NCBI RefSeq assembly: GCF_000150275.1
Contig: NW_002060972.1
Coordinates: forward strand, 252,500 to 316,499
Direction: 5' to 3'
Source: Trichoplax adhaerens
Lineage: Eukaryota; Animalia; Placozoa
DNA length: 64,000 nt
The notes below the pieces were generated by a model. That model had not been told where the DNA came from and did no database searches. It worked only from the letters and a program-made list of their open reading frames with translations. Shown here one piece after another: positions 1 through 21,500 of the stretch. The translations under genes were made by a program, and so were the position numbers. The first letter of the stretch is position 1. The number at the start of each line of letters is the position of its first letter.

Positions 1-3000
1 GCAATCTTGCTTTGTAGTTTCGCCATGTGCGAACGTTGTGTCCTTGTATTGGCAAACTTCTTCCTTGGCTATAGAAACAAACAAACAGCTATGAATACAA
101 CATTACAACTAAAACTTAAAAAATAATTTCTTTAGCTTACGTGGGCACATCATTCTTGTGCAAGCCCATTTTCCTGTAATACATTTGCTGTAGTCATGTA
201 AATAAAGATATTAGATTTTACTGCAAAGAGATGAGCTATAGTATCTGTAGTTACTAGCTATTCAGTATGTAAAGAAAGGCCAACTATCGTAGAATAATTT
301 ACCAGGTATTGCAATCTTGCTTTCTAGTTTCGCCATGTTCGTACAATGTATCTCTGTATGTGCAAACTTCTCTTTCTTCCTTTGCTGTAATGGGAAAATG
401 AAGCTATTACGACGACATGGAAACAAAGTTTATTTATTAATCTCCTTAGCTTACGTGGGCACATCATTCTTGTGCAAGCCCATTTTCCTGTAATACATTT
501 GCTGTAGTCATGTAAATAAAGATATTAGATTTTTACTGCAAAAGATGAGCTACGTATCTGCTATTTCTAGACGTTATTCAGTATGTAAAGAAAGGCCAAC
601 TATCGTAGAATAATTTACCAGGTATTGCAATCTTGCTTTCTAGTTTCATTATGTTCGTATATCGTATCTTCGTATTCGCAGACTCCTTCCCTGGCTGTAG
701 TAGAAGGAAATGACTATTAGAGCGATATTATAACTAAAATTTGAGTATCAGCTTTCTTAACTTACGTGGACATAGCATCCTTGTGCAAGCCCATCTTCCC
801 TTGATACATTTGCTGTAGTCATATTAATTAAGATATTAGATTTTTACTATTAAGAGATGAGGTGTAGTATTTTGTTACATCTGATTATTACTTAGCAAGT
901 AAAGAGATCTACCAGTAATACATATTAACAAACGGTTACTTTCATACGATAATTTACCAGGTGTTACAATCTTGCTTTGTAGTTTCGCCATGTGCGAACG
1001 TTGTGTCCTTGTATTGGCAAACTTCTTCCTTGGCTATAGAAACAAACAAACAGCTATGAATACAACATTACATCTAAAACTTAAAAATTAATTTCTTTAG
1101 CTTACGTGGGCACATCATTCTTGTGCAAGCCCATTTTCCTGTAATACATTTGCTGTAGTCATATAAATAAAGATATTAGATTTTTACTGCAAAGAGATGA
1201 GCTATGTATCTGCTATTTCTAGACGTTATTCAGTATGTAAAGAAAGGCCAACTATCGTAGGATAATTTACCAGGTATTGCAATCTTGCTTTCTAGTTTCA
1301 TTATGTTCGTATATCGTATCTTCGTATTCGCAGACTCCTTCCCTGGCTGTAGTAGAAGGAAATGACTATTAGAGCGATATTATAACTAAATTTAAGCATC
1401 AACTTTCTTAACTTACGTGGACATAGCATCCTTGTGCAAGCCCATCTTCCCTTGATACATTTGCTGTAGTCATATTAATTAAGATATTAGATTTTTACTA
1501 TTAAGAGATGAGGTGTAGTATTTTGTTACATCTGATTATTACTTAGCAAGTAAAGAGATCTACCAGTAATACATATTAACAAACGGTTACTTTCATACGA
1601 TAATTTACCAGGTATTACAATCTTGCTTTGTAGTTTCGCCATGTGCGAACGTTGTGTCCTTGTATTGGCAAACTTCTTCCTTGGCTATAGAAACAAACAA
1701 ACAGCTATGAATACAACATTACATCTAAAACTTAAAAATTAATTTCTTTAGCTTACGTGGGCACATCATTCTTGTGCAAGCCCATTTTCCTGTAATACAT
1801 TTGCTGTAGTCATGTAAATAAAGACATTAGAATTTTACTGCAAAGAGATGAGCTATAGTATCTGTAGTTACTAGCTATTCAGTATGTAAAGAAAGGCCAA
1901 CTATCGTAGAATAATTTACCAGGTATTGCAATCTTGCTTTCTAGTTTCGCCATGTTCGTACAATGTATCTCTGTATGTGCAAACTTCTCTTTCTTCCTTT
2001 GCTGTAATGGGAAAATGAGGCTATTACGACGACATGGAAACAAAGTTTATTTATTAATCTCCTTAGCTTACGTGGGCACATCATTCTTGTGCAAGCCCAT
2101 TTTCCTGTAATACATTTGCTGTAGTCATGTAAATAAAGATATTAGATTTTTACTGCAAAGAGATGAGCTATGTATCTGCTATTTCTAGACGTTATTCAGT
2201 ATGTAAAGAAAGGCCAACTATCGTAGGATAATTTACCAGGTATTGCAATCTTGCTTTCTAGTTTCATTATGTTCGTATATCGTATCTTCGTATTCGCAGA
2301 CTCCTTCCCTGGCTGTAGCAGAAGGAAATGACTATTAGAGCGATATTATAACTAAATTTAAGCATCAACTTTCTTAACTTACGTGGACATAGCATCCTTG
2401 TGCAAGCCCATCTTCCCTTGATACATTTGCTGTATCATATTAATTAAGATATTAGATTTTTAATATTAAGAGATGAGGTGTAGTATTTTGTTACATCTGA
2501 TTATTACTTAGTAAGTAAAGAGATCTACCAGTAATACATATTAACAAACGGTTACTTTCATACGATAATTTACCAGGTGTTACAATCTTGCTTTGTAGTT
2601 TCGCCATGTGCGAACGTTGTGTCCTTGTATTGGCAAACTTCTTCCTTGGCTATAGAAACAAACAAACAGCTATGAATACAACATTACAACTAAAACTTAA
2701 AAATTAATTTCTTTAGCTTACGTGGGCACATCATTCTTGTGCAAGCCCATTTTCCTGTAATACATTTGCTGTAGTCATGTAAATAAAGATATTAGAATTT
2801 TACTTCAAAGAGATGAGCTATAGTATCTGTAGTTACTAGCTATTCAGTATGTAAAGAAAGGCCAACTATCGTAGAATAATTTACCAGGTATTGCAATCTT
2901 GCTTTCTAGTTTCGCCATGTTCGTACAATGTATCTCTGTATGTGCAAACTTCCCTTTCTTCCTTTGCTGTAATGGGAAAATGAGGCTATTACGACGACAT

Positions 3001-5380
3001 GGAAACAAAAGTTTATTTATTAATCTCCTTAGCTTACGTGGGCACATCATTCTTGTGCAAGCCCATTTTCCTGTAATACATTTGCTGTAGTCACGTAAAT
3101 AAAGATATTAGATTTTTACTGCAAAGAGATGAGCTATGTATCTGCTATTTCTAGACGTTATTCAGTATGTAAAGAAAGGCCAACTATTGTAAGATAATTT
3201 ACCAGGTATTGCAATCTTGCTTTCTAGTTTCATTATGTTCGTATATCGTATCTTCGTATTCGCAGACTCCTTCCCTGGCTGTAGTAGAAGGAAATGACTA
3301 TTAGAGCGATATTAGAACTAAATTTAAGCATCAACTTTCTTAACTTACGTGGACATAGCATCCTTGTGCAAGCCCATCTTCCCTTGATACATTTGCTGTA
3401 GTCATATTAATTAAGATATTAGATTTTTACTATTAAGAGATGAGGTGTAGTATTTTGTTACATCTGATTATTACTTAGCAAGTAAAGAGATCTACCAGTA
3501 ATACATATTAACAAACGGTTACTTTCATACGATAATTTACCAGGTATTACAATCTTGCTTTGTAGTTTCGCCATGTGCGAACGTTGTGTCCTTGTATTGG
3601 CAAACTTCTTCCTTGGCTATAGAAACAAACAAACAGCTATGAATACAACATTACATCTAAAACTTAAAAATTAATTTCTTTAGCTTACGTGGGCACATCA
3701 TTCTTGTGCAAGCCCATTTTCCTGTAATACATTTGCTGTAGTCATGTAAATAAAGACATTAGAATTTTACTGCAAAGAGATGAGCTATAGTATCTGTAGT
3801 TACTAGCTATTCAGTATGTAAAGAAAGGCCAACTATCGTAGAATAATTTACCAGGTATTGCAATCTTGCTTTCTAGTTTCGCCATGTTCGTACAATGTAT
3901 CTCTGAATGTGCAAACTTCTCTTTCTTCCTTTGCTGTAATGGGAAAATGAAGCTATTACGACGACATGGAAACAAAGTTTATTTATTAATCTCCTTAGCT
4001 TACGTGGGCACATCATTCTTGTGCAAGCCCATTTTCCTGTAATACATTTGCTGTAGTCATGTAAATAAAGATATTAGATTTTTACTTCAAAGAGATGAGC
4101 TATGTATCTGCTATTTCTAGACGTTATTCAGTATGTAAAGAAAGGCCAACTATCGTAGAATAATTTACCAGGTATTGCAATCTTGCTTTCTAGTTTCATT
4201 ATGTTCGTATATCGTATCTTCGTATTCGCAGACTCCTTCCCTGGCTGTAGTAGAAGGAAATGACTATTAGAGAGATATTATAACTAAAATTTGAGTATCA
4301 GCTTTCTTAACTTACGTGGACATAGCATCCTTGTGCAAGCCCATCTTCCCTTGATACATTTGCTGTAGTCATATTAATTAAGATATTAGATTTTTACTAT
4401 TAAGAGATGAGGTGTAGTATTTTGTTACATCTGATTATTACTTAGTAAGTAAAGAGATCTACCAGTAATATATATTAATTAACAAACGGTTACTTTCATA
4501 CGATAATTTACCAGGTATTGCAATCTTGCTTTGTAGTTTCGCCATGTGCGAACGTTGTGTCCTTGTATTGGCAAACTTCTTCCTTGGCTATAGAAACAAA
4601 CAAACAGCTATGAATACAACATTACAACTAAAGCTTAAAAATTAATTTCTTTAGCTTACGTGGGCACATCATTCTTGTGCAAGCCCATTTTCCTGTAATA
4701 CATTTGCTGTAGTCATGTAAATAAAGACATTAGAATTTTACTGCAAAGAGATGAGCTATAGTATCTGTAGTTACTAGCTATTCAGTATGTAAAGAAAGGC
4801 CAACTATCGTAGAATAATTTACCAGGTATTGCAATCTTGCTTTCTAGTTTCGCCATGTTCGTACAATGTATCTCTGAATGTGCAAACTTCTCTTTCTTCC
4901 TTTGCTGTAATGGGAAAATGAGGCTATTACGACGACATGGAAACAAAGTTTATTTATTAATCTCCTTAGCTTACGTGGGCACATCATTCTTGTGCAAGCC
5001 CATTTTCCTGTAATACATTTGCTGTAGTCATGTAAATAAAGATATTAGATTTTTACTTCAAAAATGAGCTATGTATCTGCTATTTCTAGACGTTATTCAG
5101 TATGTAAAGAAAGGCCAACTATCGTAGGATAATTTACCAGGTATTGCAATCTTGCTTTCTAGTTTCATTATGTTCGTATATCGTATCTTCGTATTCGCAG
5201 ACTCCTTCCCTGGCTGTAGTAGAAGGAAATGACTATTAGAGCGATATTATAACTAAAATTTAAGCATCAGCTTTCTTAACTTACGTGGACATAGCATCCT
5301 TGTGCAAGCCCATCTTCCCTTGATACATTTGCTGTAATCATATTAATTAAGATATTAGATTTTTAATATTAAGAGATGAG
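1..5380. repeat. Higher-order tandem repeat, ~965-bp unit = three pacifastin domains (6 exons plus introns); one unit shortened to 651 bp
   Basis: A-type exon left edges at 958, 1609, 2574, 3541, 4512 (spacings 651, 965, 967, 971). Exons and introns are near-identical. Domain types: A (KEEVCQYK), B (KEEREVCTY/FR), C (REGVCEYE). Confidence 0.97.
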
Positions 5381-8300
5381 CCTTAGTATCTGCTATTTCT
5401 GATAATTATCTAGCATCTAAAAAATCTAGCGTTGATACATGTAAAAAAGGGCAAATGTTATAGGATAATTTACCAGGTGTTGCAATCTTGCTTTGTAATT
5501 TCACCTTGTTGGAACATTTCATCTTTGTATTGGCAAACTTCTTCCTTGGCTATATTAGAAAGAAAACGTCCTTCAGGGCGATTTTATAACTAAAATTTAA
5601 GTATTAATCTCATTAACTTACGTGGACACATCATCCTTGTGCAACCCCATCTTCCATCAATACATTTGCTATAGAGATATAAAATAAAAGATCAGTATTT
5701 ACAGTTATTAAAACTGGACTACAATATCAGTTGTATCTCTTTAGTCTCTTGCGAGACAGAAGCCAAGTCATTATGCATGCGTAGAGCAGAGATCAAAGTA
5801 CTATACTGAAATTACTTAATAGCATGCTAGTGTTTAATAGGGTTGCTTTCCTTACCAAGTGTTACAATCTTGTTTTCGGGTAGCACCATGTTGGAAAGTT
5901 TCGTTTTCATGGAAGCATGATTTTCGCTCTATAAGTAGTTTAAAGAACTTAGTCAGTACCACAAACTAGCACTAATTATCCTTTTCAACTCCAACTTACT
6001 TGGTGGACACATCATTCTAGTACAAGCCCATTTTCCGTTAGTGCACATGCTAAATACACGTAAATGATGCAGCATTAATACAAGGTAGATAGATCAAATG
6101 TACAATACGGAATAAATTTTTACCAAGTGTTGCAGTCTTGCTTTCGGGTTTCTCTATGAGAATAATATTCATTATTATGGACACAAATTTCGGATCCTGA
6201 GGTAAAATGAAAGCGAAATTAGTATCCTAACAGCTGTAATCCAAAATCTGAATACTGATCCCATTTCGATTACTTACCTGGTGGGCACATTTTCATAGTG
6301 CATGCCCAGCTACCGTTGTTGCATATACTACATACAAATTACACATCGTTAGCTAACCTATCCTTTTGTAAGGAACATATTCATTTCAATGATAGTTACA
6401 AATAGATGAAAGTTTCAACGTAGCTCTATATCATGGAATAATATCCACCTAATTCAATCTAAAATGATTCAATAAGCTATAATATTTTTTTTACCAGGTA
6501 TTACAATCTAAGCTTCTGTTTTCGCCATGGTTGAATTTGAGGCCACTATGTCGGCATACTCTAGCAGCTGATCAACATTAAATGATCACTTTATTAATTA
6601 AATAGAAAATGCAATTGCACACTATAGCTTCAGTAGCATCTTTTAAATCTTCTGAATAGGAGAACTTACTGGTGTTTTCGTGGTGGCGGCAAGGTCTGTG
6701 TCTACATCCCCAGAAACCTCCTTCCATGCATCGGCTATAGATTAATTTAATCATATCATAACAAGATAAATACCAAGAAAAAGGACTTATCTATGATTGT
6801 CGGTAATCAATTAAATGATATTTTAGAAACATACCAATGTCTGCATCGGTGTCGCATTCTGTGGCCAACTTCAAAAGTTCTGTCCATCATTCTACATTTT
6901 CTTTCTGTTATTCATAAGCAATGGAAGTTAGGCATCGCAGTTTTTCATATTCGCTTGGTATCATTGCTATATAGCTTGGATTAACTGTTTACCTGGTTTG
7001 TTTTCACAAGTATTTTGTGTGCAGTTCCAACTTCCATTTGAAAGGCATTGGCTAATAATTTCGCAGTATAGTAGTGTGAATCAGAGTTAAAGCAGAGTAA
7101 ATATCTACTACTGATGGCTTTAAATCTTTGATTATTTTACCATTCATTGCAGTCTTGTTTGGATCGTTCGCCTTCATAGAAAAGACGTTTTCCGTGTTTG
7201 CAGGTTGTCTCAGCTACATTAAAAGGAAAGAAAGGTGTTATACCAGTATTTTATGTCAAAGTCAGTATCAATTTTAGTTACAATAACTGTAATAACTTAC
7301 AAAGTGTTTCGTTTTCAGTGCAGTCTTTCGCTGTGCATGCCATATTACCAGTAGGTAAGCATGTGCTATAAGAAAATAATGGATGAGTTTTAGTATTCTC
7401 GTATGGACCTTCAACGTTATATTTTTAATCCGATAATAATTAATCAATGAGTAACATATTCATTTTACACACTGTCGTAGGTCTAAATACTTACCATAAG
7501 TTGCAGTTCTTGCGGATAGTTTCACCATGGAAAAGGAACATTCCACGCATTTCGCATATGAATTTAACATCTAGATATCAATGAATGGCAATTAGTATTT
7601 CTTTCCGTTAAAATGTGTTAGGGTTGCATAGTAAGAGACAAGAAAATACTTACGAGGATTAGAGCAAGGTTTGGTAGTACAGTTCCATTCGCCATTTGTA
7701 TAGCACTTACTATATAAGTAAAAGTATCGAAAAAGGTTTCATCAGCTTAGCCAACAGGTAAAAGTAACAAGCAAAATTCGACACTATGACAAATCTTAAT
7801 CCTACTTACCACATATTGCATCCTTGCTTCTTAATGGTACCAGCAGCAAAAGTCCTACCACGGAAGGTACAAGTCGGGGTAGTTTCTAGATGAAAAGTCA
7901 AATTGGGTAATTATGAGGCCAATTCCTCAATTTGGGATTTTAATGTAGGATTGAACCGAACTCTTGATCGATTAAATTAAATGTATTTTCCCACTATAGC
8001 TGCTAATTTCTTATATTTCTGAACAAAACCTAACATTTGTTTCAATATCTCAATAGTTAACCTCAATCAAGCTACAAACGTTATCTAATTCATTATGGGA
8101 AATAACCTAGCTAACATAAACTTGCTCAGATATGTTACAATGTTTGCTGCTAAACATGTACTGTGTTGTATCCGAATAGCTAGTTATTGACAATTCTTGG
8201 TCACAACTCTTACTGAAACAGTAATAAGATTAGGTCTATATATATAATACCTGCTTAACCTGATATTATAGCTTTCAACTATCAAAATACCCCACTAGAC

Positions 8301-11300
8301 TCTTCATTCAAGAATATTGATTTCTTGTATTCCTCAAACAAGGTCTAATGTTTTCTACAGTATCTTAATAGTTTACCTTAATCAAGCTATATACTTGCAT
8401 CTCATTCATTACGAAAATAATCTGGATTATATAAATTTGTTAAGATATGTTGCAATATCTGCTGCTACAGAAGTGTAGGACTTTATTCGAATAACTAGTT
8501 CTTGATAGTTCTTGATCGTAACTCCTACTACAACAGTAACTAAGATTAAGTCGATGGACTACTGTACTGAACCCAGTGATAAAGCTTTTAGCTACGGAAG
8601 TATACCAGTAAACTATTCATACACAACCAATTAAGCTTGCATAATTACCATTGCGAGGTGGACACATCATTCGAGTGCATCCCCAAGCTCCATCCTTCAG
8701 GCACATACTATTAGAGAATAAATTATGAAAATGATTAATCTATTTCTACAAAGAAATAGTACTTAGAGCTATTCATTTATTCATGCCAAGTTCTATCCAC
8801 CTACCATCGGTTGCAGTCATCCATACGTATTTCACTAGGACGATAGATTTCATTGTTGTGTGTGCATAATTTGGTAGCCACTGTACCATAAAAATATGAA
8901 TTTTATAATCATTAATGACTACATAGTTGTGAGTCTTAAAATAGATTGCAAAATAATTGGACTAGCTACTGCTTCTAAACTGCATCTCATCATAACTGAT
9001 GTAAATGCACTGTCAACTTGTGTTCCAAACTTGAATGAAGCACTAAAAGATATCAACTTTTTCCTAGTAGTGATGATCAACTACTCAATTAAAATTTTGC
9101 ATTACTTGGTTGTTTTGGACATTTAAAGGCGGTGCAAGCCCACAAGCCATATTTGTTACATTTGCTATTTTAAAGCCAATTCAAGACATTCATCAAGTAA
9201 CAAATTGTTGCAAATATTAAATGTATACTGTGTTATTAAAACGCTAGTATTACATTAATTGGATTTCATCTTACCACTTGTTGCAACTATCCTTTTTGGC
9301 AATAAAGCCAGTAGGGTAAGTTGTTCCCATATGATAGCAAACTGGAGATTCTTCTATTTTATATAGAATAAAAAAAAGGATTCACAGTTAATTCAAGACT
9401 AGCTAGGAAAAAATGCTTTGGATAGAACTTACCACGTGCACATGGTAACTCCATACACTCAACAGTTTCATTACCCCGGCATGAACTATTAAACAACAAA
9501 CAGTTAAGATTTGATACTAAATTTTACTATAATAATTCAACTCTCCAACAGCCTAACTAACCAATAACTGCAATTAAACTTTCTAACTTCACCCAAGTAC
9601 AATGTCGTATTCTGGTAGGTGCATTGAGGTAGTGATTCTAGCATTAAAACCATAGTCATTGGAGAATCATTAGTAAAACCGATCAATTCTACTAGACGGC
9701 AAAGTGATATGATTGAATAAGAATGGAAATAAAATATTTTCTGATACCTTTCTCATAGTTTGGATTGCACATCATTCGTGTGCAAGCCCACTGGCCGGTA
9801 TAGCCGCATTTGCTGAAAAATAGCAAATTGTCGATATTAGCAATGGCATGAACTTAACTTTAGCTTTTATATAGGAAAAGACGAATGATAGCGTAGACGA
9901 TTAACGATTTAGATAGACCTACCAGAGATTGCAGCTATTACGGATCTGTTCTCCCTTCTGGAAATATTGATTGTTAAATTTGCAAACGCGTGTAACGTCT
10001 AGAGATAAATTAGAAAATGATCGGCTCGGTATAACAAGGTAGAATGTTATAGAAATATGCTCTGTATTTAAGGTAAAGATAACCAAAATTTAATTACATG
10101 CTTTTATTTTATTTTGAAAAATTAAGTTTTACTTACTGTATTTCTCTTCGACACAGACTTTCTCGGTGCACATCCATTTTCCGGTAGATGAGCAAGTACT
10201 AATAACGAGTGATATCGGAGTTATTTGTTGAAATATCAAGCATGACCGATTTGATGCAATCATTACGATCAAACTGAAAATTCATTAGCTTGAATCAAAT
10301 TGATTTTTCTTACCATTTATTACAGTCAAGGAATTTAGTTTCTCCAACTCGACTGACTTCATTACCCATTTGGCAAGTGGTATCTGAAATAGAGATAGAG
10401 AAATTGGTTAGTTAAAACATTGCAAGAATATGAACTACTATTGAAAAGAAAGTCATGCTTACTTGGTCTATTAGGTGGGCACATCATTCTGGTGCAACCC
10501 CAACCACCATTGGTTAAACATTTACTACAAACGTAAAGTTCTCCATTTTAGAGCAGAATCATACAATAGTATCACAGATAAAGCAAAATGATATACCATG
10601 TATTGCAGTCCTGCATCCGGATTTCATAGGTATTATAAGTTCGGTTTTCGTGCATACATAAAGTTTGGTTGACTAAAAAATTGATGCCAAGATTAAATCG
10701 ATTCGCTCAGCGAGCTTATTATTTCATTTAGATATTTAAATATACAAACATGTAGTTGGGCATCGCTTAGCGGTACATAGCCATTGTCCAGTCTTGCCGC
10801 ACATACTGTAAGGGAGTAAAATAGTTAAAAAAATTGAATTGGAATGTTAAATTCCTATTTTAAAGTTGTAAAAATACAAAATCTAAACTGCCGATATTGA
10901 TATGATATAATCAATTTATCGATACCTCTCATACCGCAAGATATGCAGTTGCAAAACTTATTAATCCTTATACATAAAGATATTTCAAAATTGGCACGTG
11001 TGCTAACATATTAAGGCCTATTACTCACCAGGTATTGCAGCTCTGCTTTTTAATATGTCCAATGTTAAATCGACGACCACGGTGGACGCAGCCTTCTATA
11101 AGGACAACGAAAAATAAAATTTTTACGATACATCTATTTATTAGGCCTATTTCTGTAACCAATTTCCCTAAATAAATACTAAGAAACCCTTATTTACACT
11201 ACCTTGGCTATAAGGATATCCGCAGCTATAGTTTGAGCAAGCCCAGGTTTCATTTCGGGTACAGTTGCTATAAAAATATCCAAGATACAAGATTATTAGT

Positions 11301-14300
11301 CCTAAATACTTATTACATTTTGAAATTGCTTGCTCCATGTAAATAATTTATTAACACACCAGAAATTGCATTGGTCTTTACGGATTTCACCATGGAAGAA
11401 AGTTCTTGTTTTATGTTGGCACTGAGGTACAGTTGCTGTGAATATAAAGAAAGAAATTAATCAAGACTGAGATATATTACTAAGAGAGCAGGAGTAATGA
11501 CCTAAGGATAGTAAAGCGCTAAATAATAATTAATTTAGATCAAAATGTTAACCATTACTTAAATTAAATTCAGGTGGACACATTTTAGTGGTACACATCC
11601 AGCGTCCAGAGTTTGAACAGCGGCTAAATTTGATAATGGAAAAACGTTAAATATCAATTTGTGCTATTATCTAAGATTTCTCTTTGGTAACAAGTAATAG
11701 CTCAATGGCATAAATATTAATACCATAGATTGCATTTTTCCCTTCTTAGTTCACCGCGAACGAAAAATCGCCCGTCTTTTTCACAAACGTTGTCGAGCAT
11801 GTTAGCTGTAATAACATATAAGCCATATTTAAATTGATAGTCGAGTTTGAACTGATAGAAATCAAAGTATCAATTTAAGAACACTATGTAGCAGATGATT
11901 TTAGATCTCTTAATAAGGTTTATTCAGTATTAATTAATCTACATGACCGCCCATTACTTTGGTTAGTTGGCTGGCAAGCCATTCTAGTGCATGCCCATAT
12001 GCCCTTTAGGCATCGACTAAATGAAAGTAATAAAATAAAGTAAAAAGTGAGCTTATTCTTTGCCATTAAACATGATCACAAACAGTATAAGTAATAAGCT
12101 ATACCAGGTGTTGCAGTCTTGCTTCCTCATTTGATATTGTCTGTATTCACGACCACGGTACGTGCAGGTATATTCTATGAGTATCAATATAAAATTAAAT
12201 TTCATCATGAGACAGATAAGAAGTAAAATAAAAATGATTAATAATCCCGATCTATTTCGCCAAATTGCAGTTAAAGCATTGATATAAACTTGCCTCTGTT
12301 GGGTAAACACATTCTGCGTGTACACATCCACTTAGCGTTTGGTCCACATTTGCTGTAATACAACATTATGCAATTAGTTAATCAATTATAAAATAGCATA
12401 TATGCGACCTTTAAATTGCCGAAGAATCCAGATTTAGAATCTTAGTTATAAAATGAATAAGTTTCAATTCATACCAGTAGTTGCAGTCGATCTTGGTAAC
12501 CGCGCTAATGTTATATTCTCGGTCGTTTAAGATACATTTCCTAGTCTTGGGTGGTGTATCTTTAATACAATTGCAACGAAGTGTTAGGTCTGCCTATCAA
12601 AGTAGGCTACTTAAACTAAATGCATCAATGCTTCGCAATTTCTTCCTGAATATCAGTATAACTAATGAAAATGACTACAACTGAAATCACATAAATGTAG
12701 CAAATGATGCATGTCTAACTTGAACTTGTACTTGGAGGTTAGAAATTAAGGAAAAGCTATAATTATATCTCCAATTATTGCAAATATTGTAATGTTAGTA
12801 CTACTTAAATGTGTAGGTAATCTAAGTAAACATCTTCATAATCTCTTTGATCAGCATAATGGCTATCACTGTTCTGGTAATAATGATTGATAATGCCTCT
12901 TTGGTATGAATATCAAGGTAACGGAAGCTTATACTAATACATAGTAAAAAATAGGAAATTTATCCAATTTAGATAGTACTGACATTCCACTGGAAAGAAT
13001 ACGAAAAGAAAGCTAAACTTTCATAATATAATAATTACCTGGACGATCATTGCAATCATTTCTGGTACACATGAATTTGCCAGTTGGTGTGCATCGGCTA
13101 GTAATCAAAAATAAAGCGGATGAACCAATCAATAAGGATAGAATGAATCCTATCAAATACTAATGATCTTTTTTATAGATTATGTATACCAAACATTGCA
13201 ACCACGAGCTACGTAGTCACCAGTTCTGAATCTACGTCCGCCATAATTGCAAGTAACTAAAAATGGAGAAGCAAGTTTACGATTGGTCTGTTCAAATTAT
13301 GTACAAGTAAAACATGAGCTAGTTACATTCTCTAGGTGGGCAGGCTTTACGTGTACAACCCCATCGATTGTTTCCGAAACATCGACTATTATCCAAAGTA
13401 AAAAATAATCAAATTAGCACGACTATTTATGTAATAGCATAACTAGCTAAGAATTTCACTGACCAGATGTTACAATCGTCAGCTCTTGTTTCTTCTTTTC
13501 TGAACATTTTACCTTCAAAAATGCAGACATCTCGTCGTCCTATGCATTGATTGAGCAATCCAAAGATTAGTTATAAAATAATAATATAACTACTGAATTA
13601 TCTATAAGTATGCCTAAAATACTCTTGATTAAGTTGGCATGAAAACTGAAGAATAATTAGGATGATTGAATGTATTTTTGTAACTGTTATCAACATACCT
13701 TCAGGTGGTGGGCAGAACATTCTGGTACAAGCCCATCTGTTGCTACCAAGGCACTTACTATTTGAAAAATAATTCCAAAAAGTTTCACTTTAGCCATTTG
13801 CTGTAAAAATGCAACACCACTGCTATTACTAGACTTGATGATAACTGTTGTAAACTAAGTTAAAGGTGAAAAATTAACCAGGTGTTGCAATCTTTGCGTT
13901 TGGTTTCATTTTGCTTGAGCAACATGGTATTATGGACACACAATTTGGTAGTATCTGTAATGATTGCAAGACATGAACAGTTAGACAATATTAACATCTC
14001 AGTAGAACGCGATGAGCTTATTTAGGTTACTAGCAGCCACTCCATGAAGAATTTATGCTAGCAAAGGAAGTTAGTAGCACTATACTGACCTGGGTGATTT
14101 GGTGTATCAGGGCAGGCTATCCTGGTGCAAGCCCATTTGTTTTGGCCTAAACACTTGCTAAAGAGCAAGAAGAAATAAATAAAGACGAGCTATAGCGATA
14201 ATTGATCCTCTCAAATTGCAGATATACTGCTAAATATTTCAATAGCGAACAATAAAAGCATATAGAAGTACTGATAATGAAGGAGCAGCAACACCTACCA

Positions 14301-17300
14301 TTGATTGCACTTTTGCTTAACTGTTTCGCCTAAGCGGAATAGTTTCTCTTCGAAGATACACGTATCAGTTCCATTTGGCCTAGTTGGTTTAGTACCTGAA
14401 GAAAACAATCATATCATTACTAAACTAGAACTTGTAAGATATTTTCTAGAAAGAAATTCCACAGTTAGCTTGCATCATCGTTGGCCTCCTTTGTTATGAA
14501 GCACTAACCCCTATAACCAAATCTATTTACATCCATTATCGTCTAACGAATATGAAAGTAAAACTTAAATACCATTGTTGCATTGATCCCTGCGGACGAG
14601 CAGTTCTTCATTTGGATTGCATCCGTTAGAATTTTCGCAACATCTAGTTGAACAAAAATCAATCTTAATAATGCGAGATTTGAATACTCTGATGAGATTA
14701 GAATCATCTGTCCAATTCATTGTATGGCTTTGGTAATTTAGCCTTGTTCTCAGTTAGTTTACTCACTGGCTGCAGTTATCCCTCTTACAGAAAGTAGTGA
14801 CCATCATGGGGCAGATTCGGTTATCTTGAGGATTAAAGGGACATCTTGGCAAGTTATTAGTTCCAGTAGGTTGGCAAGCCATCCTAGTGCAGCCCCAGCC
14901 ACCATTCTTCAAGCACATGCTATAGAATGAGTCAAAATTTTAACATTAGATCTTGGCCAATTTAGCTGGATCATGCTATCAACTTATACTAACCAGGTAT
15001 TGCAACCATCTTCAGCCTTTCGGTTTTCTCCAACTTGATAATTTATGTTGTTAAATTTGCAAGCTAGAAAAAATACCAATATCATCCATATAAGATTTTA
15101 TTATAATTATCTTTAAATAGCGATCGAGAATCATTTAAAACCCAGCTCTATAACTTACTGGAACATGCTCCTTGTTCAAAACGGATAGGGCGGCCACTTT
15201 GACATTCAAGTCTTCTCAATTCGCATAAATTAGAGATGGTAGTGCCGGTCTCCGTATTGCAAATAGGTTGATAGATTTCAGGACATGCTTCATTACATCG
15301 ACAGACGGCTTGGCTATTGAGGACTTGGCAAGTCTGCCTGAAACCGCATCGAGCGCGCATACATTCGGCTATTACCGGTAGAGAGGACAGCATTAAAATC
15401 TTTATTAGTAGCTTGGAAATCGATGATACTGAATATTACTAACTCTAGAGCAAAGATGTGCAAAGTACCAGTGAAAAGCTGTTTGTACTGTAAGCTACGT
15501 TTTGTCATAGTAGGAATTGGTATGATCATTTCCATTTTTTACTCCCCTTTTCGTCAAGGAATAATTTCGGAAATTATAGTAGACTACTTATATTATTTCA
15601 TATGTCAATAAGGGATATTTTCTTTGCTTCAGTAGAATCAACAGTAGACAGAACTTTTGCATAGGTATGCTCATATGTTAGTTCAGGATTTTACAGAGCG
15701 AAATTGAAATTCTCAACTTTTAATTTGCAAGGATTCCGATTTGACTTTTGAGAGTAGAAATTCCTAGTTTCTTAGTATTAAAATGTACCTAATATGCTCG
15801 TATGCTTAAATTTGAGAATTCTTCAGAGCAGAACCTCGACTCTTCAAAACTAGACAGGAATTTTAATTTGCCTCTATTATAAAATAGGTCATATAATGTT
15901 CTTTCCCAAGTATAATATGCTAGGGTTGAAAATTTATCACAGCAGAATTTCAATAGTTTACTACGGAGTTTTTGACTTGCCCCTATAGCTAAAAGTATCT
16001 TCAATTTTCAAGCATAGTATTACAAAAATTCAACTGAGTAAGCTGCAGGTAAAGTAAGGTTAGCTTAGTTAAGAATCCTTGAGGGAAGAATCTTAATTCT
16101 CGGATGTTAAAACCATCAAAATTTTTGGGTCAAAATTTTGTAAAAATACAGCTAGTTCCGCTGAAGCATGAACTACCAGAAATTTCAAATCTCTGGCGGT
16201 CCATATCTGAATTAAAATTTCTGTAGTTTAAAATTCTTTAGAGTAGAATTCGAACTCATGGGTGTCAAAATCATTCAATTTTTGTTTTGCAAATATGCCA
16301 TTGAATGCACCGTAGTTACGTTAGTGTAAGAATCCTTCGCAGAAGAGTCTTCACTCTAGGATGTCTAAACCATCAAGATTTTGAATGACCTCTACAGCAG
16401 TTGAAACTACTCTCCATTTTTACGAACAGTAAGGCAAAATGATCACTAGAATAGCCAATTTTACGATAGAATGGCATGAATGATAAACTACCGTATAAAC
16501 AAGCATCAACGAATGCTTTGACGTCAAGATTGGCCAGCTCCGCTTGTTTTTGTCAACAGTTTTTAATCTCAATCAATAACAAAACTGAGAAAATTTTTGA
16601 ATTGATAACGTTGAGAGTTATAATAAATAGACGGCGATTTAGATTTTATACGGGAAATAGAGTAGAACTGATTCTATTGCGCAATCAGTGTTAGCAAATA
16701 AACTACCCTGTTGTTTTTACGTCATCTAAGCCTAGAGTAGTTTATTTACACTTATTTATACACCCCACGTTGCGAACGGCATGAGATAAATGGATAAATT
16801 GCAGCTGGATGTACTGTACGATTCTAATATTTGAAGATCGATTAGAACTCAATACTAGAACTCTCTATAGTACTTTCAACGATTACGCTATCGGCTGTTC
16901 CGTCCAATCTCAGAACTAGGTGATATTGACGTCAAGATAATATTGCCTTATTACTATCAAAACAGGCAAGACGACAAGCAATTTAACAACATTATTTTGT
17001 TATAACGAGAGTATAGCAAGATAGATATAGGCAAATGGACTACTTATCTAATTAGTAGCACGATTTTTCAATCATGATAAACAGATGGTTTCATTGGCTG
17101 TTTAAAATTGCATAATAATAAATAATGTTTACTACAATCTCTTCTCATGGACTGTATTCGAATTCATAGTTCAAAAGTTCAATTTTAATAAGGATTGGAT
17201 ATGCTTCAAGTGCATGAATTGACTAGAAACGAATTAAAGTCTAAAATAAACGTAATATTTATAATTGATGTGACTTAGAGTTAATAAAGTAACCAATGCT

Positions 17301-18514
17301 TACTAGTGATTACATAATGGAGAAAATATTGGATCAGCTTTTAATCCAGCAGATAAATATAGTAATTTGTGTTCTATCCTTATAAAATTTTACTCGATGA
17401 TAGCAATAAGCGTCAAAGTGATATTCGATAGGGGAATTCTTGCACGATTCTAGTCTGAAAAATAAGCCACTAATATACTGCAAAGTAGTTTAAAAAATGA
17501 ACCAAACGGAAATAGAATAATACTACGCGAGAACTAACTGGAATGAATTGGAGGAAATGTCTCTTGCGACTGATTGATCTCATTTGCACTTAAGCCATAT
17601 TTCAAATTTAAAGCGAATTAAATGCTACACTACACCATAAACTTAACTTGGGACGCGAGTCTAAAGTAAAATTCTTTCATTAACTAAGTTTGAATAGATA
17701 GGCATTAGGCTATCTTTGTCCACTAAAATAAAATACCTATGAGGTACTGATATAGGTGATCATGAAATTTCACGTATTATGAACTTCTTAAATGAGCATA
17801 CCGATCACATTATTAATTAGAATCTAATTATCATACCTTAATTATGTATTTCCTTAATTAATGCATATGGAATTTTGGACTTTTCACATATAGTTTATGG
17901 AATGACTACAAAGATCTAATTTGCCATTCTTTTTTTATATTTCTTGCTTACTATAACAACTAAACATAAACGACTACGGCGGTATTTATAAATATCATCA
18001 ATCAATTTTAGCTGGTATAAAATGCAAGCTTTGCTCATCAAGCAAACTGAACATTCATGCGCGTAAATACTGAAATGATTCGATACTCTTCATTGCATAA
18101 ATAAGCGACTGTTGTCAGTAAAAAGTTTACATGAGTATTATAACAGAGCTGTAAAAATAGATAGAATAGCTTACCTTGCATGCAGGTGAAGTTTAATTGA
18201 GGTAAGCGCCTGAATGTTTCTCCAATGATTGGATTATCGATGGCTGTTTGGAAGGGAAGTACGCTACCATCGTCTTTGCGATGGGCGCAAAACAATCCCT
18301 CTCTACAGACACCTTGTCCGACAGGGCTCATTCCGATAGCGCAAATTTGATTTTCATTTTTGACGCAAGTTTGGCAACAACCGCAAAAATCAGAAGCAAT
18401 TGGTTCCTCACAATCTGGCCTAGGACATCGAATTATTTCGCATTGTGGACACGTAGTGGCCCAACAAAGGCTTACGGCACTGGCAAGTGCCAATGAAAGA
18501 AAAAGGAATTTCAT
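1..18514 (-). CDS. Giant secreted multidomain Cys-rich protease-inhibitor-like protein: SP-IGFBP-follistatin/Kazal-pacifastin-WAP-like-(pacifastin)x39+; 3' end beyond window
   Basis: Hand-spliced exons are phase-compatible with no stops: 18175-18514, 15159-15368, 14994-15063, 14767-14919, 14573-14643, then alternating a/b exons 14299-14395/14090-14157, 13879-13954/13699-13757, 13464-13539/13327-13385 ... 303-384/141-187, and partial 1-68. Typical domain: KEEVCQYKDTTFAHGETTKQDCNTCKCIKGRWACTRMLCP. It fits the pacifastin (MEROPS I19) pattern CNxCxCx2-3Gx3CTx3C and resembles the locust SGTI/PMP-D2 core KQDCNTCxCxxxGxWxCTRKGC. I count 40 complete domains plus one partial. The join across the 2.8-kb first intron is inferred from phase. 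Confidence 0.9.
8020..8620. repeat. Degenerate ~315-bp intronic tandem duplication
   Basis: caatagttaacctcaatcaagctacaaac...ccgaatagctagttattgacaattcttggtcacaactc versus taatagtttaccttaatcaagctatatac...tcgaataactagttcttgatagttcttgatcgtaactc. Confidence 0.8.
14573..14850 (-). other. WAP (four-disulfide core)-like domain between pacifastin domains 1 and 2
   Basis: Spliced translation LPRCPFNPQDNRICPMMVTTFCKRDNCSQCCENSNGCNPNEELLVRRDQCNN: 8 Cys in WAP order (CP..C..CxxDxC..CC..GC..C) with atypical spacing. Confidence 0.55.
15159..15368 (-). CDS. Exon 2: follistatin/Kazal domain (10 Cys)
   Basis: ECMRARCGFRQTCQVLNSQAVCRCNEACPEIYQPICNTETGTTISNLCELRRLECQSGRPIRFEQGACS: FOLN part plus Kazal CPxxYxPIC...NxCEL...C...GAC. 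Phase 1-1 exon. Confidence 0.9.
18175..18514 (-). CDS. Exon 1: signal peptide plus IGFBP N-terminal domain
   Basis: Hydrophobic leader MKFLFLSLALASAVSLCWA, then CPQCEIIRCPRPDCEEPIASDFCGCCQTCVKNENQIC...GVCREGLFC, containing the IGFBP CGCCxxC motif. Phase-1 donor G|GTAAG at 18175. Confidence 0.88.
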
Positions 18515-21500
18515 AGAGTCGATCCTTATAGTTAAGAAAAAGAACAGACGAACAAAGATTAAAAAAAAAATTGGCTGCATCTACCGCTCATTCTCTGTCA
18601 ATTTTAAATCTTACAACTGAGCTAAAAGCACTTCATTTAATCTAATGAGTAACTATTTTGATTAAATCGTATCGATTAATAGTCTGTACTAATTATATCA
18701 ATACTATCATTACTTATCTTTCCTATTAAAAAGATGAGAATAGGATAGCAAATAAAATGACGCAAAATTGAACACCTAATTCTAGTGCAAGACTTATTTC
18801 GATATTTTTTCTTAGTTTAGAACATCATCTTAATTCTTAAATTTATCGATTGCAGTCTTTTCAAACACTAAGCAATTATCATCTAAAATTTCCTTTTTAA
18901 TCGATAAGCGATATTTTATAAAACAAAAATTTTGCTGCAATAAATGGCTTGCTTCATGCTATCGTTATTTTCTTTCTAGCATTGGTTAAACTATATAAAT
19001 TTTCTAAAATAGGAATTCTCTAATGTCAAAATTATTAACTTGAAAAAAACTCAGCAGCAATCACAAAAGAACTGAGACCTATTCTAAGCTTACTGAAGTT
19101 CAAGAAGCGTATTAGAATACTCTATCTAGGAATCCACTCGTTACCATTTTGAAAAATAGTGACTAGGGTGAGTAAAGCTGTTTAAGTTTTATTACAACGT
19201 TTCTTGCAATATTAGAAAGTGCAATAGTATTTAATCAGGAAATTGCAGAGCTGATTAATGTAATTTCGTATGATCAAAGACTAGGAAGTACACGTATTAT
19301 GCACTAATTTTTGCTTCACTATAAACATAACTTTTTTTAGATTACTGAATTGGAAGTTAATGAGAATAATTTTATCTGTACTTTTATCTCCTTTTTTTAG
19401 ATAAAAATATGTTTTGTTAATGTTATCTAAGTGATACTGATTTGTTTACGTATCTATGGTAGAACTCAATTGGTTTTTCCATAAAATTTAGGTTACCAAA
19501 TTTAGTTTTAAGTAAATTGAAGGATGTGTTTTCACTGTACCCTCCTGAAGACAGGAAACGCTTAGTATTTTTAAGTTATACGAAGTGCTAGAAGATTTAC
19601 GCTTACTGTCTCGTTGCAAGCTCAAGTTTGTAAAATTTTACTCCATTTTCTCAACATCTTACTCTAAAAAGTTTGTTACTAAAACGGATATTCGTACTGC
19701 TGAAAACGATCCCTTATCTATCTTCATGTACCGTGAAATCAAAGACTATCTAATTAGAATTTGAAAATCTTGAATTTGCAAAATGAAATAAAAACCTACA
19801 AAAGAATTTGAATTCCAGCTACCCCAAATATTAAGTTTCTTAATATTTGTTACTTAATAAAGCATCAATGTCATTAATAGTGTAAGAGAAATCCATCAAT
19901 TCTAGAGTGAACTAGTAGGGCTTTTAAGAGTAATTTTTTTCCAAATTTTACCTTACAAAACGTGATCTTCCCTATAAGATTGATTTGGACTTGATAGATT
20001 GGGTAAAGTTTAATCAATCGGGTCTTAAGTGATGTCAGTGCCTTGCACTCGTCTATATAGGTATGGATTTGAGCAGTAGGTGGTCTAACAAAATGATATT
20101 TATGAAGGCATTTGATTGTCATTAATAATTTTACCTATGATTGGTTACGCCATTGAAAATATTGAAATTTTTTCGTGAGGTTAATAACATGCACGACCCC
20201 ATTCTAAGTTCGTTTCATAATATTTTTGCACTGTCATTCATCCTAAGCTTACCACAATGATATCTGATGCCGTAGCTTATACGAGCACCGAAATCAGTGA
20301 ATTCAAAATGTGATGAAATAGTAGACATTGTCAAAATACACAACATGCTACCATGCGTAGCTGATCGTCATTCCATGGCTATTTGATGTATAGTCATTAA
20401 AATTCACAGCAGACCCCACGGAATACTTTAAAAGTCAAATGAATTAATAATATTTTTCCTATAATGAAAATATACACTACTATCGAGTAGAAGCACGCGG
20501 TGTTCAACGGTCCTTTTGGAACAACTGCTATGCATCGAGTTAGAAGACAAGCAGTACCGTTCTATTAATCAGACACTTGTTATTATTTTTATTTTTGAGA
20601 CGGTATTCAGGTATTAATTTAGATTGGCTTTTTTTATCCAATTCAAAGGATAATCACTCAATATCAAAGCGTATATTCCTAGATTGAAGATTGCTGTAAT
20701 TTGGTATAGCAGCAGTGTTCAATATTCATTCCACCATTTTATGCAAACGCTGCATCCATTTACTCATTGGTCTAATATTGCACTAGTTTCTAGTTTTGAT
20801 ATACGACATGTATATCAAGTTCAAGCGTAGCAATAGCCTGTATGGCTCCAATTTAAGAGCACAGATGAAATTCAAAAATAGTAAAACTATTCCAAGCGCC
20901 AGAATTAACCTCTACGTAAATATTATGCACGAGCGATTGCTCTCGACTGACAAAATCACTGCATGTAAATGTTTAACGGCGGCTTAAGTTCGATATTGAT
21001 CAACAGATAGCTTTCCAATATCCATGTAGAAAGTATTTTCTTTAGCAAAGATAATGCAAACAATTGGGTGCATGCATAAAATTTAAGTAATATTCTAGGT
21101 TCAAAATGATGTCATTAGTACTAACGATTATTTGAGTATGATATTAGAATATGGCTTGAAATGAACGCATTGTTTTCGTCTGCGATTTTATGACAGATAG
21201 AGAGTAAATTTATTCGTGGATCGAGTGTGTTTAGGGTTATATGCATATTGATCTTAATTTTACTAAAATACAATATGAAGTATAACGTACAATGTGAGCA
21301 GCCTCTGTTATATACTTAAGTTTGAAGATGCGCTGTCGCTACGACTATTACAACTGGCTTCTATATATCATTATAATGAGCACCATGAATATTCAATATT
21401 TTCTAATAGCAGATAAATCTATTTGCACCAACTATGCCATATGTGACTTCGCATAGCTAATAAATTGTCGCTTTGGCGGCAAATTGTAATTCTTCGAAAA

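Follow-up and report, generated by a model that had tools for sequence, protein, structure and literature searches.

A stretch of 64,000 nucleotides of the Trichoplax adhaerens genome (RefSeq assembly GCF_000150275.1, contig NW_002060972.1, positions 252,500 to 316,499; hereafter the window) carries at its left end, on the minus strand, a giant gene that, judged by its sequence and its list of domains, is the already published TAPP-1 (XP_002117942). Our analysis supports that a head consisting of an IGFBP and a Kazal domain and a very long array of six-cysteine modules belong to one transcript of this gene, and the comparisons described below make it probable that the product is a secreted, multivalent canonical inhibitor of trypsin-like serine proteases, built from modules of a long-hairpin class. 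TAPP-1 was described with 88 exons and 42 pacifastin-like domains of two exons each, of which 30 were predicted to be of the trypsin type, and no expressed sequence tags were available to verify the model (Breugelmans 2009, PMC2689174). The array has been known since 2009, together with its size and exon grammar, and the domain class since 2026; novelty of the array is not supported, in agreement with the remark in the sequence-only reading, made from these letters before any search, that a placozoan pacifastin-like precursor had been predicted before. What is new is the RNA-supported start of the gene with its IGFBP and Kazal exons, the probably false published first exon, a higher module count, an assembly gap and a young three-module repeat, and also a possible short isoform, a half-by-half link of the modules to the E modules of von Willebrand factor (VWF) and a collinear head in a cnidarian protein.

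On the minus strand the frame stays open between the ATG at 18514 and base 1 of the window, through 84 coding exons (6003 bases, 2001 codons, no stop). The gene model was obtained with a splice-chain search trained on the obvious exons and was then corrected by hand using the frame and the RNA joints. Exons measure 47-340 bases and introns 70-2806 bases, with a median of 102, and the introns in the window comprise 82 of the GT-AG type and a single GC-AG intron (donor 12293). Two short exon types with GT..AG borders alternate regularly along the strand and together encode one module, three cysteines each; phase-1 introns flank the module and a phase-2 intron splits the codon of its third cysteine. 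The encoded chain starts with a hydrophobic N-terminus resembling a signal peptide, as judged by eye only, followed by the IGFBP domain, the Kazal domain, module 1, an eight-cysteine insert, 39 further whole modules and one module cut at base 1. The 84 exons and the 40 whole modules plus one cut, together with the Pfam and RNA evidence, bear out the proposal of the sequence-only reading that one chain of at least 84 exons joins IGFBP, Kazal and at least 40 modules.

That the chain runs off the window, as the same reading had it, turned out to be a matter of the assembly. A run of 1855 N adjoins window base 1 on the left (G000:C1385:250645-252499; L002 8146-10000), and past this gap there are 11 more exons encoding five more modules and a short tail, ending in a stop codon about 2 kb beyond the gap (L002 6080). 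With these included, the gene comprises no fewer than 95 coding exons and 46 modules, in an array that the gap interrupts. Next to the gap lie modules 25-41 (1..5213, minus strand), a young array recognised by self-similarity and by Tandem Repeats Finder, which gave a period of 315, and cut by the window edge and the gap. It consists of a three-module repeat of about 967 bases whose copies are 97-99.7% identical in blastn comparisons, introns included. Because the copies are near-identical, the array must have grown very recently, and the copy number in this assembly is not reliable. Given that the gap sits inside this repeat, the true number of modules may vary between individuals. Modules 2-24 (5214..14395, minus strand), again with two exons each, are diverged, and no DNA similarity was detectable by blastn among modules 1-23; modules 2-24 are defined by the splice chain, by RNA joints in the case of modules 2-5, and by Pacifastin_I matches on second-half exons. 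The 763-base intron between modules 16 and 17 (7886-8648, minus strand) contains an internal repeat of about 300 bases, present twice, and no open module remnant.

The continuity of head and array was observed in RNA. Contigs of four runs were mapped over 12620-18600, namely X5 and X6 (RNA-seq), X4 (probable RNA) and X1 (DNA-like). All 14 model introns inside this interval were seen as joints in X5, X6 and X4, with GT..AG ends and on the gene strand. Among them, the joint 15368->18175, found in two contigs of X5 and in X6 and X4 and absent from X1, skips the 2806 bases of the intron at 15369..18174 and ties the start-codon exon (18175..18524, minus strand), which encodes the signal-peptide-like N-terminus and the IGFBP domain and is delimited by Pfam and RNA depth, to the Kazal exon (15159..15368, minus strand), which has RNA joints at both ends. 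Word depth was in the thousands over exons versus 12-42 over the long intron, within which no further open reading frame of at least 90 amino acids was found. In X1, by contrast, exons and introns were covered evenly at a depth of about 100 with zero joints, and the joined forms are therefore RNA. Further joints (15063->15159, 14919->14994 and 14643->14767) lead through module 1 and the insert (14573..15063, minus strand) and on to the following modules; the contigs are short, and a single molecule running from head to array is inferred because the chain of joints is unbroken.

These joints bear directly on the alternative, implied by the published model, that the IGFBP and Kazal exons belong to one gene and the module array to another. 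In XP_002117942 the gene begins at 15535, without either head exon, and the intron between IGFBP and Kazal is far longer than the median intron of the gene, which would be in keeping with a gene boundary. However, the joint 15368->18175, the joint 15063->15159 and those onward are present in three RNA runs from two studies at exon-like depth, linking the IGFBP exon, the Kazal exon and modules 1-5, and separate genes, the outcome that the sequence-only reading had named as fatal to its proposal, are thereby rendered highly improbable. The published N-terminus translates from window 15535-15376, which places the published first exon, known as the 'signal peptide' exon of XP_002117942 (15376..15535, minus strand, identified by translation match), inside the long intron, where RNA depth is 17-41 and no joint leaves it; this exon is probably a prediction artefact.

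The transcript begins upstream of the start-codon exon. Contig tails extending past 18528 in X5 (70 letters) and X4 (25 letters) had no local fit, and their reverse complement, matched by eye, corresponds to the minus strand at 19985-19956. The 3' part of a non-coding first exon can thus be placed at 19952..19985 (minus strand), with a donor GT at 19951-19950 spliced to about 18524; this 5' untranslated exon is at least 70 bases long and starts further upstream. An in-frame ATG at 18580 falls inside the intron 5' of 18524, and therefore the start codon is the one at 18514. RNA joints and frame led to the removal of several elements of the first automatic chain: exon 1 had been split, the long intron had received three mini-exons, and a 24-base exon (6423-6400), a short donor (13351) and a truncated exon (12140) had been called. 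One exon end was corrected by the RNA joint 13256->13327.

In the comparison with the published model, domains TAPD-1 to -5 match modules 1-5, whereas the published model lacks the IGFBP and Kazal exons and the model described here has 95 coding exons besides the 5' untranslated exon. At least TAPD-6 and TAPD-9 are chimeric, each pairing a first half with the second half of the module that follows, so that an exon pair is skipped. In the case of TAPD-6, the published model skips the exon at 12352-12294, which directly precedes the GC-AG intron (GCAAGT donor, 12292-12293), and the next exon; the GC donor at 12293 and the exons at 12352-12105 are inferred from the splice chain only. The text of the 2009 paper makes no mention of Kazal, IGFBP, insulin or WAP (PMC2689174), and XP_002117942, not found in the main text of searchable papers, is listed in its supplement. 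The main text of the 2026 paper on the family does not mention IGFBP or insulin, and two supplementary files contain no IGFBP, Trichoplax or Placozoa (PMC13388995). The assertion that no described protein combines these domains stands only for the IGFBP head, which neither pacifastin paper mentions; the array was published in 2009.

Both domains of the head were recognised by Pfam. The exon at 18514-18175 matched IGFBP (PF00219) with 31.2 bits, above the cut-off of 28, along the full length of the profile (residues 22-76), and it carries the sequence CGCCQTC, an instance of the CGCCxxC motif. The exon at 15368-15159 matched Kazal_1 (PF00050) at 21.6 bits, barely above the cut-off of 21. A search of protein representatives with the IGFBP exon returned a 134-residue placozoan-like fragment (64% identity) and IGFBP proteins of other animals, and the same search with the Kazal exon, under length limits that exclude the giant protein, gave no candidate. 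The closest non-placozoan head is that of the predicted 'four-domain proteases inhibitor-like' protein XP_031566431.1 of the sea anemone Actinia tenebrosa, which is collinear with the Trichoplax head: the IGFBP region is 36% identical, and its Kazal region (Kazal_2) is 38% identical to the Kazal exon, without gaps (E 6e-16), which backs the narrow Kazal_1 match. Directly after the Kazal domain this protein has a six-cysteine module (C-x17-C-x2-C-x-C-x6-C-x3-C), for which Pfam gives a weak half-VWC reading and to which profiles of both halves of the Trichoplax modules align in the right order, weakly (E about 0.07). It differs in being 354 residues long and in continuing with antistasin and Kunitz domains, with no module array. 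An IGFBP-Kazal head is also shared with IGFBP7, KAZALD1 and HtrA1. In IGFBP7 and KAZALD1 the head is followed by an Ig domain, and in HtrA1 by a protease and a PDZ domain; neither arrangement is present here, where only six-cysteine modules and the insert follow the head up to the stop codon. The IGFBP-Kazal head may represent an older scaffold shared with cnidarian multi-inhibitor proteins.

The modules follow the pattern C-x16-18-C-N-x-C-x-C-x6-7-C-T-x3-C, of which the window holds 40 complete copies and one cut. Across the 45 whole modules of the gene, Asn follows the second cysteine (C2) in 39, Gly is found in the C4-C5 loop in 44, Thr follows C5 in 39, and the C5-C6 loop has four residues in 43; the spacing between C1 and C2 is 16 residues in 41 modules, 17 in three and 18 in one. 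Each module has six cysteines and is joined to the next by a cysteine-free linker of 6-13 residues; the ten-cysteine arrangement of VWC with a second subdomain was not found. The modules carry the pacifastin signature C2-N-x-C3-x-C4-x(2,3)-G-x(3,6)-C5-T-x3-C6. Since an intron splits each module, comparisons with Pfam and the PDB were made exon by exon, that is, with half-modules. In a six-frame search of the whole genome, Pacifastin_I (PF05375) matched 31 second-half exons of this locus with scores of 16-26 bits, the alignments covering positions 16-37 of the 40 in the profile; in the exon-wise scan the second-half part of module 1 scored 21.6 bits. A profile built from 25 second-half exons and compared with all PDB chains found SGPI-1 first (2xtt, E 1.3e-5), then 1wo9, 2vu8, 1kj0/2f91 and 1gl0, up to E 0.015; the alignment spans the reactive loop W-x-C-T-R-x-x-C-P-P, nothing else appeared below E 1, and VWF and mucin chains were absent even at E up to 10. 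The second half is thus the part shared with the arthropod pacifastins (SGPI-1/SGTI, 2xtt, 1kj0 and 2f91; 1wo9; 2vu8; LCMI I, 1gl0), which also have in common with the Trichoplax modules the stretch before C2-N-T, the six-cysteine pattern, the Asn after C2, the Gly in the C4-C5 loop and the Thr at P2. They differ in having 9-12 residues between C1 and C2, instead of 16-18, and 1-13 domains, instead of at least 46; unlike them, the Trichoplax modules are split by an intron, dibasic pairs are found in only five of the linkers, and an IGFBP-Kazal head precedes the array.

On these grounds we favour the inhibitor function, and the mechanism we propose is as follows. The protein would be secreted and, in view of the few dibasic linkers, would remain largely intact. 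Each module would present its C5-C6 loop, with Thr at P2 and Arg at P1, to the active site of a protease, as is the case for pacifastin domains of locust and crayfish; 31 of the 45 whole modules have Arg at P1, giving Thr-Arg at P2-P1. The protein would likely act on digestive trypsins that the animal itself secretes, or on proteases of microbes at the feeding surface. Lipophil cells are known to secrete trypsin and chymotrypsin for external digestion (PMC6737977), and a 2025 paper on placozoan secretory cells makes no mention of inhibitors or Kazal.

Several observations weigh against this interpretation. RNA support covers the head and modules 1-5; beyond them the chain depends on its frame, its splice sites and the published model. 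Pacifastin_I scores of individual exons of this gene all stay below the cut-off of 27.9 bits, peaking at 27.4 in the exon scan and at 26.1 in the genome search. The Pfam model itself is not specific in this genome, given that five other loci are matched by both Pacifastin_I and VWC at similar scores. In the oldest modules P1 is Arg in only 11 of 23, with Ala, Thr, Glu, Asn, Gln, His or Met in the others, and the P1 Arg of the young array is there because of recent duplication and does not reflect independent conservation. Finally, the first half of the module lies nearer to the structural E modules of VWF and mucins than to pacifastins: a profile of 27 first-half exons best matched VWF 829-848 and 350-369, MUC5B (832-851) and MUC5AC, with E 1.7e-8 for whole VWF and 0.003 for the best single stretch, and it reached pacifastin inhibitors over its last ten positions only (E 0.016-0.04). 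The two VWF stretches, in D' and D1 respectively, are what we take to be E modules. Shared with VWF, MUC5B and MUC5AC is the sequence C-x-H-x-G-x-x-[YF]-x-x-G-E-x6-C-N-T, with its 16-residue spacing. A Pfam scan of the 27 first-half exons at E up to 10 gave nothing, VWC and TILa included, and neither did one single first-half exon compared with the PDB; it is the profile of these exons that carries the signal.

The likeness of the first half raises the alternative that TAPP-1 is a structural or adhesive extracellular protein of mucus, glycocalyx or matrix, made of VWF-type E modules, in which there is no inhibition and the loop is a feature of the fold. The best matches of the first-half profile, to the E' and E1 regions of VWF and to mucins 5B and 5AC, are what would be expected in that case, and the VWF E' module presumably shows an identical spacing of its cysteines, with Asn-Thr behind C2 and Thr behind C5. 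The 34 N-glycosylation sequons in one giant chain would also suit such a protein, as would the report that long-hairpin domains are often found in matrix-type proteins (PMC13388995). However, all PDB chains recovered by the second-half profile are true inhibitors, with VWF and mucins absent up to E 10, Pfam VWC and TILa have no match at the locus, and the gene lacks the VWD, C8 and TIL partners that accompany the E modules of VWF and mucins. Moreover, P1 Arg is retained in about half of the old, diverged modules, and in the sea anemone this type of head carries other inhibitor domains (Kazal, antistasin, Kunitz). Weighing both sides, we regard a purely structural role as unlikely, and an inhibitor as the better account of the modules.

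Another alternative is that TAPP-1 regulates secreted signals, the modules binding ligands of the BMP/TGF-beta type and the IGFBP head binding insulin-like peptides. The IGFBP match lies above the Pfam cut-off, VWC-type repeats look like the module in their N-terminal half, and the VWC repeats of chordin and crossveinless-2 do bind BMPs. Against this role, the related HtrA1 protease has an IGFBP-like head that is not known to bind IGF, Pfam VWC finds nothing at the locus, and the very high transcript depth, the at least 46 repeats and the recent identical copies fit a bulk effector better than a regulator of morphogens, which makes this possibility improbable.

The sequence-only reading had noted that a C1-C2 spacing of about 16 residues makes the module resemble also the VWF E/TILa repeats, and this caution was justified, with the first half best matching VWF and mucins and the second half only pacifastin inhibitors. 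Regarding the Pfam models it had put forward (Pacifastin_I, VWC/TILa, WAP, Kazal and IGFBP), searches with single exons found IGFBP and Kazal above the cut-off and half-modules below that of Pacifastin_I, and VWC, TILa and WAP gave no match at this locus. A recently described 'Ancestral' class of pacifastin domains is characterised by a hairpin extended to 13-20 residues between C1 and C2, with many Tyr/Phe and Gly; the class is reported from early-branching animals, including Placozoa, and is often joined to Kazal, Kunitz, WAP, TIL or VWC domains (PMC13388995). By its sequence, the TAPP-1 module is a combination of an E-module-like long first hairpin and a half bearing a pacifastin-like reactive loop, and it fits this class.

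Searches of the genome with related models placed 12 VWC (PF00093) and two TILa (PF12714) matches, none of them at this locus. The five loci with dual Pacifastin_I and VWC matches are single-exon modules (G000:C1412:551787-551876; C1409:1920108-1920176; C1409:1947045-1947110; C1409:4257843-4257902; C1287:4976-5041), and one of them exceeds the Pacifastin_I cut-off, with 30.1 bits. Other genes may thus carry additional domains of the long-hairpin pacifastin-like or half-VWC kind, and because of these dual matches the boundary between the Pfam models Pacifastin_I and VWC has to be considered soft.

The insert between modules 1 and 2 is a separate matter. Module 1 is formed by the exon 15063-14994 and the start of the exon 14919-14767, and the remainder of the latter together with the exon 14643-14573 encodes the insert (14873-14573), which has 71 residues and eight cysteines, including a CC pair, in the spacing C-x9-C-x7-C-x4-C-x2-CC-x5-C-x12-C. 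It had been read from the letters as a WAP-like domain, and we did not accept this label: neither insert exon matched Pfam WAP (PF00095) at E up to 10, in a test that is weak with the insert split over two exons, a PDB sequence search found no solved relative for either exon, and the cysteine spacing departs from what we take to be the WAP signature. A WAP search of the same genome found four true WAP domains elsewhere and none at this locus.

In X4 only, a joint 13039->12933 leads to an alternative exon (12656..12933, minus strand) with a contig depth of 3740 continuing to 12656, which meets a stop codon at once (12931-12929), whereas X5 and X6 go from 13039 to the exon at 12559 instead. It is possible that this joint yields a short secreted isoform consisting of the head and five modules. 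X5 and X6 (organism B) and X4 (organism A) differ from the window over 12620-18600 at many sites, mostly intronic, and by small indels, which suggests strain or sister-lineage variation at the locus.

With regard to the origin of the family, a tentative scenario is that the TAPP-1 modules are intermediates between E modules and arthropod pacifastins, carried on an IGFBP-Kazal-module head shared with cnidarians, and that pacifastins are older than the bilaterians, having originated when an E-like module multiplied in tandem within an older multi-inhibitor scaffold. We hold this to be possible, with the odds against it; if it were true, the published gene model would have hidden the link between E modules and pacifastins. 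In any case, whoever takes XP_002117942 for expression, phylogeny or recombinant work starts from an incorrect N-terminus and from two or more domains that are chimeras. The corrected protein is a mosaic headed by IGFBP and Kazal domains, with more modules than published, instead of a bare array behind a predicted signal peptide, which usefully corrects a known gene without amounting to a new type of system. Comparing the modules half by half provides a concrete link at the sequence level from the E modules of VWF and mucins to the arthropod pacifastins and bears on the question, raised in 2009, of common origin or convergence, and TAPP-1, as the largest known pacifastin-type precursor, is the key data point for deciding whether the family predates bilaterians.

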